A stretch of 64,000 nt of DNA from Scyliorhinus canicula (GCF_902713615.1 NW_024055500.1:1-64000), one strand, 5' to 3'; counted from the first letter of the stretch, positions 27,851 through 30,260 are shown. The notes: generated by a model from the sequence alone, not told the origin. Translations and numbers: made by a program.

Positions 27851-28388
27851 AATGCAGATTTGTATAATTACAATAAAACTCTGTAGTTGCAACATTCTCT
27901 AATTTTAGGATCATGCACATTAACAGCAGGAGTCGGCCATTCGGTCTGTCGAGTCTCCTCCCCCATCCCCCTGCCTGTGTTGATTGGGCAGTTAATTTCA
28001 CATTCCGCCTGTCACTGAGACCGGGCTGTCTGCACCCCCCCCCCCTCCCTCCCCCCGCCCCGCGCTCCCTGTGCGTCCCCCATCTCTCTGCGGTTCCCGC
28101 TGGATTTCTGTACCTTTCTCCTGGTCCCTTCACTTTCTTTTAGCTCTCTGCTCTTTTTCACGGCGCTCTGCGCTTTCTTCCGCATCTCTGCACTTTTTCT
28201 CGACTCTGCATTGTCTTCCTGCTCTTTGTGTTTTGCCCATGTGTGCTGCACTTTTCCCAATTCTTTGTGCTTTTCCCGGTTCCTGGCAGTTCCCACCAGC
28301 ACGGTTCGCTTTACCCCGATTCTTATCGCTCATGACCAACTGCATGGATTTTCTTCCTGCTCTCTGCTCCTTCCCCCTGTTCTCTTTA

Positions 28389-28580
28389 CCTTCCCCAGCT
28401 CTCTGAACCTTCCCTCGGCTTTCTGCCCCTTCCCCCCGGCTCTCTGCCCCTTCCCCCGGCTCTCGGCTCCTTCCCCCGGCTCTCGGCTCCTTCCCCCGGC
28501 TCTCTGCTCCATCCCCCGCCTCTCTGCGCCTTCCCCCGGCTCTCTGCCCCTTCCCCCGGCTTTCTGCACTTTCCTCCGCC
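28389..28580. repeat. Tandem array, about 9-10 x 20 bp (ttcccccggctctctgcccc); G-rich on the IgM sense strand
   Basis: Directly visible 20-bp period; degenerate pyrimidine-rich extension back to about 28085. Confidence 0.9.
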
Positions 28581-28689
28581 TCCCGACAATCCCGTGTCAT
28601 GCAGCCACATTCGCGCCACTCGTCATCAGTTTCGCTCCAGTTCTCTATTCCTCCCCCGTTGCAGACGCTCCCTTGCCCATTTCCTGAGC

Positions 28690-30260
28690 ATCAGTGAGAG
28701 AGGGTGAGTGAGTAACTGAGTGAGGGTAGGAGAGTGAGTGTGGGTGAGTGAGTAACTGAGTGAGGGTAGGAGAGTGAGTGTGGGTGAGTGAGTAACTGAG
28801 TGAGGGTAGGAGAGTGAGTGTGGGTGAGTGAGTAACTGAGTGAGGGTCGGAGGGTGAGTACGGGTGAGTGAGGAACTGAGTGAGGGTAGGAGAGTGAGTG
28901 TGGGTGAGTGAGTAACTGAGTGAGGGTAGGAGCGTGAGTGTGGGTGAGTGAGTAACTGAGTGAGGGTAAGAGGGTGAGTGCGATGAATGAGTAACTGAGT
29001 GACGGTAGGAGAGTGAGTGCGGGTGAGTGAGTAAATGAGTGAGGGTAGCAGGGTGAGTGTGGGTGAGTGAGTAACTGAATGAAGGTAGGAGAGTGAGTGC
29101 GGGTGAGTGAGTAACTGAGTGAGGGTAAGAGGGTGAGTGCGATGAGTGAGTAACTGAGTGATGGTAGGAGAGTGAGTGTATGTGAGTGAGTAACTGAGTG
29201 AGGATAGGAGAGTGAGGGTGTGTGAGTGACTAACTGAGTGAGGGTAGGAGAGTGAGTACGGGTGAGTGAGTAACTGAGTGAGGGTAGAAGAGTGAGTGTG
29301 GGTGAGTGAATCACTGAGTGAGGGTAGGAGAGTCAGTACGGGTGAGTGAGTAACTGAGTGAGGGTAGGAGCGTGAGTGTGGGTGAGTGAGTAACTGAGTG
29401 AGGGTAAGAGGGTGAGTGCGATGAGTGAGTAACTGAGTGACGGTAGGAGAGTGAGTGCGGGTGAGTGAGTAAATGAGTGAGGGTAGGAGGGTGAGTGTGG
29501 GTGAGTGAGTAACTGAATGAGGGTAGGAGAGTGAGTGTGGGTGAGTGAGTAACTGAGTGAGGGTTGGAGAGTGAGTGCGGGTGAGTAACTGAGTGAGGGT
29601 AGGAGAGTGAGTGCGGGTGAGTGAGTAACTGAGTGACAGTAGGAGAGTGAGTGTATGTGAGTGAGTAACTGAGTGAGGGTAGGAGAGTGAGTAACTGAGT
29701 GAGGGTAGGAGAGTGAGTGTGGGCCAGTGAGTAACTGAGTGAGGGTAGGAGAGTGAGTGCAGGTGAGTGATTAACTGAGTGAGGGTAGGAGAGTGAGTGC
29801 GGGTGAGTGAGTAACTGAGTGAGGGTAGGAGAGTGAGTGCGGGTGAGTGAGTAACTGAGTGAGGGTAGGAGAGTGAGTGCGGGTGAGTGGATAACTGAGT
29901 GAGGGTAGGAGAGTGAGTGTGGGTGAGTGAGTAACTGAGTGAGGGTAAGAGAGTGAGTGCGGGTGAGTGGATAACTGAGTGAGGGTAGGAGAGTGAGTGT
30001 GGGTGAGTGAGTAACTGATTGAGGGTAGGAGAGTGAGTGTGGGTGAGTGAGTAACTGAGTGAGGGTAAGAGGCTGAGTGTGATGAGTGAGTAACTGAGTG
30101 ACGGTAGGAGAGTGAGTGTATGTGAGTGAGTAACTGTGAGGGTAGGAGAGTGAGTGCGGGTGAGTGAGTAACTGAGTGAAGGTAGGAGAGTGAGTGCGGG
30201 TGAGTGAGTAACTTAGTGAGGGTAGGAGAATGAGTGCGGGTGAGTGAGTACCTGAGTGAG
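28690..30260. repeat. Tandem array, about 39 x 40 bp (gtgagtgagtaactgagtgagggtaggagagtgagtgtgg)
   Basis: Directly visible 40-bp period. Confidence 0.92.

Follow-up and report, generated by a model that had tools for sequence, protein, structure and literature searches.

A G-run minisatellite with predicted R-loop and G-quadruplex propensity lies upstream of an AGCT array in the JH–Cmu1 intron of a catshark IgM cluster

Mammalian switch (S) regions are 1-10 kb long, the S-mu region of Xenopus is AT-rich, AGCT-rich and without R-loops, and GC-skewed CpG islands form R-loops at promoters. To our knowledge, sharks have no translocon locus with deletional class switching, and Zhu et al., in 2012, are said to have placed the junctions of shark inter-cluster switching in the intron between the JH segment and the first constant exon, Cmu1. 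In mouse cells, G-clusters initiate R-loops and elongation requires 35-50% G (Zhang et al., PMC4245955), with a drop in G density from 46% to 29% roughly halving both R-loops and switching. A 150-bp low-G insert between the initiation and elongation zones likewise roughly halves R-loops and switching in these cells without abolishing them, a greater promoter distance reduces both, and the R-loops extend up to 600 bp beyond the G-rich zone (PMC4245955). Reviews describe cartilaginous fish as lacking switch regions, yet a VDJ can be expressed together with the constant region of another cluster (PMC4279169), and our literature search found no paper linking sharks with G-rich or R-loop-type switch sequences. 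Here we describe a G-rich block at positions 27990-28690, hereafter the G zone, in the JH–Cmu1 intron of an immunoglobulin M (IgM) cluster of the catshark Scyliorhinus canicula, contained in a 64-kb stretch of DNA that we call the window (GCF_902713615.1 NW_024055500.1:1-64000). On the sense strand of the window, the G zone is, as judged by sequence-based prediction, the stretch most prone to R-loops and G-quadruplexes (G4s).

The window holds a single shark-type IgM cluster. Its VH, D1, D2 and JH segments with their recombination signals, together with four C1-set exons, are all read on the minus strand, which is thus the IgM sense strand, as the original prediction had assumed. On that strand the G zone is 75.6% purine, in agreement with the roughly 700 bp of purine-rich sense sequence initially described, and 43.2% G, and no other 700-bp stretch of the window reaches 40% G on this strand. 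The high G content extends over 0.7 kb at 43%, short of the 1 kb or more at about 40-50% G that marks a mammalian-type switch region, with a core at 54% that spans 224 bp, and the adjoining 7.5 kb upstream has 3% G on the sense strand. The GC skew passes from about -0.5 to +0.87 within 200 bp, flipping at 28692/28693, which is the border with a 7.5-kb array and lies where a sharp change of strand asymmetry near 28690 had been anticipated. In the direction of transcription, the G zone and the sequences between it and the constant exons are arranged as follows.

28583-28692, minus strand: non-repetitive flank, C/T-rich on the + strand, reaching the strand-asymmetry flip
28359-28582, minus strand: core of the G-run minisatellite, with 11 copies of a 20-bp unit (GAGCCGGGGGAAGGGGCAGA as sense consensus) and a sense-strand G content of 53.6%
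28100-28358, minus strand: decayed A/G-rich tail with the same 20-nt period, 32% G on the sense strand
28020-28085, minus strand: second G block, with a + strand C-tract at 28035-28061 (27 bases; 89% C)
27852-28019: low-G spacer of 168 bp, 25.6% G on the sense strand, with a 42-bp dispersed-repeat fragment at 27925-27966
27260-27851, minus strand: AGCT array with 20.4 copies of a 29-bp unit, an AGCT density of 49/kb and a sense-strand G content of 26.4%

The core was identified by Tandem Repeats Finder (TRF) as an array of period 20 with 11.2 copies and 83% matches. The original prediction had noted 9-10 copies at 28389-28580; the repeat is real and its consensus is a rotation of the unit then proposed, and the array is larger than was stated. 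The most conserved part of the GAGCCGGGGGAAGGGGCAGA units is their G5 run, and each unit carries a GGGAA core as read from the sequence. Self-identity of the core at a lag of 20 nt is 0.76, compared with 0.39 +/- 0.03 in shuffles. The tail keeps this periodicity, with a lag-20 identity of 0.46 (0.31 +/- 0.027 in shuffles), a period 20/40 repeat found by TRF at 28145-28219 and GCAGAG recurring every 20 nt; because the 20-nt period is retained while A-runs replace the G-runs, we regard the tail as an older, decayed stretch of the core array. The second G block accounts for the G-run that had been reported at about 28035-28060. Across the whole G zone there are 12 runs of at least five Gs, compared with 5.3 +/- 1.8 and a maximum of 11 in 1000 dinucleotide shuffles, and the 701 nt of sense strand hold 18 runs of at least four Gs and 31 of at least three, the latter count being derived from density. 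H-DNA or triplex formation was considered and has little in its favour, since pure pyrimidine tracts reach 22 nt at 28035 and at most 12 nt elsewhere.

Several computations converge on this block as the place where sense transcription would favour an R-loop. By QmRLFS-like rules, the minus strand of the window contains two R-loop-forming sequences, one of which covers 27873-28557 and stops 22 bp short of the AGCT array; on the + strand, an R-loop-forming sequence lies at 28844-36855. In the minus-strand sequence of the G zone, a cluster of runs of three or more Gs is followed downstream by a zone with at least 35-40% G over at least 100 bp. We also computed hybrid-minus-duplex energies from nearest-neighbour tables (the Sugimoto hybrid table of Biopython and a duplex table of the SantaLucia laboratory) and, because these differ from the tables of R-looper, the published R-loop energy model (PMC6442632), we read the energies as ranks only. 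Among all 200-bp windows on either strand, 28356-28555 ranks first, and 27953-28152 is the second of the sense strand. The AGCT array is neutral by this measure, and the 7.5-kb array favours antisense RNA only.

The predicted G4 propensity has a similar focus. Of the sense-strand regions of the window with a G4Hunter score of at least 2.0, 4 of 6 fall in the G zone, as do 11 of 24 at a score of at least 1.5. Over the whole window the latter threshold gives 24 minus-strand and 36 plus-strand regions, so repeats with G- or C-runs are common elsewhere. The sole canonical G4 motif (four runs of at least three Gs, loops of up to 7 nt) on the sense strand of the intron is at 28035-28081, in the second G block, for which the mean G4Hunter score is 1.76. 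Under a rule allowing loops of up to 12 nt, another motif appears in the core at 28412-28457 with loops of 2, 9 and 2 nt. These are the only two good motifs of the G zone, the remaining runs needing loops of about 15 nt. ViennaRNA, run with its G-quadruplex option, predicts G4s in the sense RNA, the second G block included, and the energy gained by allowing them over the 701 nt is -83.8 kcal/mol, compared with -31.4 +/- 17.7 in shuffles. For the core array alone, 44 of 100 of its own dinucleotide shuffles match its gain, and since the shuffles do as well, the G4 potential of the array follows from its composition and not from a special arrangement. G4Hunter, ViennaRNA, the hybrid energies and the R-loop rules thus agree, at the level of computation, with the initial description of the block as an R-loop/G4 zone.

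Elsewhere in the window, a long G tract with runs from G4 to G13 occupies 45585-45645 of the minus (IgM sense) strand and is followed, about 100 bp downstream, by a TATTTAAAT box and the VH leader. This tract has the third-best sense-strand RNA:DNA hybrid energy of the window and may be a promoter-near G4 motif.

In contrast to mammals, AID hotspots do not lie within the G-rich repeat itself. AGCT occurs at 2.9/kb in the G zone, which is the background level (3.1/kb over the window), and at 49/kb in the separate AGCT array, where the sense strand also carries 67 WRC motifs per kb. WGCW density is 27/kb in the G zone, 18/kb in its core and 16/kb in the window. The order in which G-clusters, the AGCT array and Cmu1 follow one another in transcription is as originally proposed. 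The accompanying claim that this order recapitulates the logic of an S region is not supported, in view of the background AGCT density within the zone, the 168-bp low-G spacer and the 26.4% G of the AGCT array, and equally of the distance of about 15 kb from JH with no nearer promoter known and of a dense part of just 0.2-0.7 kb. High G density therefore does not continue through the DNA that would be the target of AID, whether spacer or AGCT array.

The AGCT array has grown from the head of a minus-oriented, tRNA-type short interspersed element (SINE), whose body continues towards Cmu1. We rejected the idea that the G zone is itself part of this SINE, because the zone is faced by the head of the element, with its A-box-like GCTCAGT.AGCTGG, and the body extends in the opposite direction. 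A search of Rfam gave no hit beyond a chance-level match of MIR860 (E 0.1) to the AGCT array. The fragment in the spacer at 27925-27966 and another at 3754-3795 are matching pieces of a dispersed shark repeat of the GGCCATTCGG...TCGAGTC type. Many read contigs show loose ends at 27925 and 27966, and many contigs from two species continue there with a shared consensus that has no counterpart at the locus.

To place the block among its relatives we used public reads. The public read sets share at most 31% of the words of the stretch, which indicates that the source individual is not among them, and contigs of one DNA run from the same species were compared at an identity of at least 80%. These contigs are mostly 90-95% alike. 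Over 28084-28692 their summed depth is about 26-170, compared with 11-17 for single contigs. As many as 10 contigs overlie one position of the tail, and as many as 20 one position of the array; there are several positions at which all same-species contigs differ from the window, and joints in the contigs skip 91, 122 or 143 array bases. These reads thus suggest that the same species has about 5-15 copy equivalents of the block, which vary in their number of units, a low copy number that would fit paralogous IgM clusters better than a transposable element. This multi-copy state speaks only indirectly to the condition set by the original prediction, that other clusters should hold a comparable block. 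The flank at 28583-28692 is multi-copy in the reads as well and is present in a second species, where its contig has further letters on the side beyond 28692. In that species one contig covers 28076-28367 at about 87% identity, joined to 28490-28558, and another matches 28613-28691; because such contigs match it, the block is older than the split from that species. Within the 64-kb window there is no second copy of the block, except for the 42-bp dispersed-repeat fragment and poly-C matches, and metagenome pattern scans with two array units and with the AGCT-array junction returned no match. A single raw RNA run yielded 5 partial reads, all on repeat or low-complexity parts, and a run merely guessed to be RNA gave a contig over 28102-28259 at depth 3.

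The remaining features of the cluster and of its JH–Cmu1 intron are the following.

45211-44843, minus strand: VH
about 44490, minus strand: D1, with recombination signals on both sides
about 44100, minus strand: D2, with recombination signals on both sides
43654-43700, minus strand: JH segment, read as ...YWGQGTMVTVTA, with the splice donor GT at 43653-43652 that starts the JH–Cmu1 intron
36986-36728: 4 copies (96% identity) of a 65-bp repeat, bordering the 7.5-kb array on its 5' side
28693-36240: GTGAG/GGGT-type array of 7.5 kb, 49% G and 3% C on the + strand
within the open reading frame (ORF) 26402-26776, minus strand: Cmu1 exon, with the acceptor CAG ending near 26758
within 26273-25923, minus strand: Cmu2
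within 25064-24780, minus strand: Cmu3
within 23180-22878, minus strand: Cmu4 and secretory tail
10613-11515 minus, 45875-48369 plus and 50568-53084 minus: features flanking the IgM cluster (zinc-finger array and ORFs of the long interspersed element, or LINE, type)

The JH–Cmu1 intron is about 16.9 kb long, including an N gap at 35368-35498. In transcription order it begins with about 6.7 kb of non-repetitive DNA, followed by the 65-bp repeat and the 7.5-kb array, and it ends with the G zone (28690-27990), the low-G spacer, the AGCT array and SINE, and about 500 bp before Cmu1. The G zone accordingly lies about 15 kb from JH, and the array and tail at 28100-28582 are 1.3-1.8 kb 5' of the Cmu1 acceptor. 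Because the G of the 7.5-kb array sits on the + strand, the IgM sense RNA is C-rich across 28693-36240, and only antisense transcription of this array would favour R-loops. Its + strand repeats GGTGAGT, which resembles a splice donor, and its sense strand repeats CTCAC...CAG, which resembles a branch point plus acceptor.

The top protein matches of Cmu1 are from Scyliorhinus torazame (92%) and Mustelus asterias, for both of which a word search found gene models that extend from V to Cmu1; the Cmu1 ORF had no exact match. A 132-amino-acid protein that is 85% identical to Cmu1 is filed at NCBI as a hypothetical protein of Salmonella enterica, from a 480-bp contig, and is almost certainly shark DNA contaminating a bacterial assembly. 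A perfect immunoglobulin (Ig) octamer, ATGCAAAT, is present on the minus (sense) strand at 27012-27019, about 255 bp upstream of Cmu1; enrichment of this octamer was rejected, since 2 matches occur in the window where 3.1 are expected, and this one may be due to chance. Just downstream of Cmu4 and the secretory tail, a 51-bp repeat of 13.7 copies at 21529-22236 carries G-runs on the + strand, and the cluster as a whole is flanked by a C2H2 zinc-finger array on an 84-bp repeat and by two LINE-type reverse-transcriptase ORFs.

We propose the following account of the G zone. The purine-rich, CpG-rich block has three parts: an 11-unit core of G-runs that was homogenised recently, an older tail in which the 20-nt period has decayed, and a G tract apart from both. 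By computation, it is the place in the window where nascent G-rich RNA would be likeliest to re-anneal to the C-rich template as an R-loop during transcription of the cluster, and where one or two good G-quadruplexes could form, in either the displaced strand or the RNA of the intron. These properties would be by-products of the composition of the amplified unit and not those of a selected switch module. An R-loop is plausible within about 28600-28000 and its coupling to the AGCT array is expected to be weak, because the spacer and array are low in G, the AGCT motifs lie outside the zone, JH is 15 kb away and the RNA upstream is C-rich; any R-loop would probably stay mostly within these limits and reach the AGCT array only in attenuated form. 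By analogy with mouse R-loops, which reach up to 600 bp further, it could sometimes run on past about 28000.

We favour, with moderate confidence, the explanation that the block is an ordinary intronic minisatellite that was duplicated with the IgM cluster, its switch-like look being a by-product. The decayed periodic tail is typical of minisatellite turnover and supports this explanation, and the block would be multi-copy with a variable unit number because it is part of the duplicated cluster backbone. Weighing against it are the position of the block just upstream of the AGCT array and Cmu1, within the intron to which the junctions of shark switching have reportedly been assigned, its retention in the second species, where some or all of the G-run array is preserved, and a CpG observed/expected ratio of 0.78, which could mean germline hypomethylation of the kind typical of regulatory DNA; the neutrality of the block, moreover, is something that we infer. 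A working proto-switch module, in which the zone initiates R-loops and/or supplies G4s, exposes single-stranded DNA and recruits AID to the SINE-born AGCT array, thereby promoting inter-cluster switching, would account for the correct order of G-clusters, AGCT array and Cmu1, for the top rank of the zone in both R-loop and G4 propensity and for an R-loop-forming sequence that ends so close to the AGCT array, and the WRC density on the sense strand of that array, the multi-copy state of the block and its presence in a second species are compatible with it. The mouse data can be read in its favour, in that R-loops there may extend as much as 600 bp beyond the G-rich DNA and are halved, but not abolished, by 150 bp of inserted low-G sequence, as well as against it, in that the AGCT array has 26% G, less than the construct of 29% G that did poorly in mouse cells (PMC4245955). 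The zone itself has AGCT and WGCW at no more than background density, lies 15 kb from JH with 7.5 kb of C-rich RNA in between, is dense in G over only 0.2-0.7 kb and has a G4 potential no greater than composition gives, and we judge such a module unlikely.

Less probable again is an intronic CpG-island regulatory element, either a non-methylated enhancer or a sterile-transcript (I-exon-like) promoter, with the skew flip at 28692 marking divergent transcription and the units binding lymphoid factors. In 300-bp windows, 27881-28750 comes out as a CpG island, for which we required 55% GC or more, a CpG observed/expected ratio of 0.65 or more and a length of 500 bp or more, and the 701 bp of the G zone have a GC content of 0.59, 38 CpGs and the ratio of 0.78 given above, compared with 0.44 for the window. 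G-richness points away from 28692 on both strands, as in bidirectional CpG-island promoters, the R-loop-forming sequences of both strands lie close to the flip, and each unit has a GGGAA/GGAA core of the sort assigned to Ikaros or ETS-family binding. However, the skew to the right of the flip is the mere composition of the 7.5-kb satellite, the CpGs may survive through recent amplification of the unit, the count of Ig octamers is not above chance, no transcription start site is known here, and the sole raw RNA run provided 5 partial low-complexity reads. Doubtful to a further degree is a composite catshark switch region built from unrelated repeats, in which a G-run, CpG-island-like module starts R-loops or G4s, possibly from its own intronic promoter at the skew flip, and hands AID to the SINE-born AGCT array, driving inter-cluster isotype switching; if true, the R-loop component of class switching would be older than tetrapods or have evolved convergently. 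We rate as improbable that the block belongs to a transposable element or satellite that has no connection with Ig genes and is scattered over the genome. It is multi-copy in reads of two species, adjoins a true dispersed-repeat fragment at 27925-27966 and neighbours a SINE-derived array, but its copy equivalents fit the number of IgM clusters better than a transposable-element family, no second copy is seen in a 64-kb window that holds several LINE and SINE copies, it lies upstream of the SINE head and is not part of the SINE, and it has no Rfam or tRNA-like hit. Intronic G-runs have a role in splicing, and the G-runs or GA-rich units, with 31 G3+ runs of intron RNA lying 1.3-1.8 kb from the acceptor, might recruit hnRNP H/F or SR proteins and help to delimit the 3' portion of so long an intron. 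Splicing elements of this kind, however, are usually effective no further than a few hundred nucleotides from the splice site, and we consider this explanation very improbable.

Whichever explanation holds, a defined 0.7-kb block beside an AGCT array is a concrete target for asking whether R-loop-assisted AID targeting exists outside mammals. Should the block be inert, it would serve as a caution that the ordinary dynamics of minisatellites and SINEs within Ig introns can give rise to switch-like sequence.

Compared with described systems, the catshark block resembles mammalian S-mu and S-gamma in several respects: it is tandemly repeated, it occupies the intron that precedes the first constant exon, its non-template strand is rich in G-clusters (43% G across 0.7 kb, rising to 54% in the core) and it is predicted to form R-loops and G4s. 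It differs from mammalian S regions in its dense part of 0.2-0.7 kb as against 1-10 kb, in having its AGCT/WGCW hotspots not among the G-runs but in a separate, G-poor, SINE-derived array, and in lying 15 kb from JH with no I-exon promoter known. In terms of the R-loop initiation and elongation zone model of the Lieber laboratory (PMC4245955), the catshark zone offers far more than the 5 G-clusters used there, followed by several hundred bp at 35-54% G, whereas its AID-hotspot DNA lies past 168 bp of 26% G and is itself 26% G. The Xenopus type of S-mu is resembled by the 29-bp AGCT array, the G zone being its opposite, G-rich and AGCT-poor. With R-loop-forming, GC-skewed CpG islands (energy model, PMC6442632) the block shares its GC content, CpG ratio, sense G skew and favourable hybrid energy; unlike promoter CpG islands, it lies deep inside an intron with no known transcription start site. 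Finally, the 20-bp unit, homogenised core, decayed flanks and differences in unit number between copies are those of ordinary G-rich minisatellites, from which no feature but its position in an Ig gene was found to separate the catshark block.

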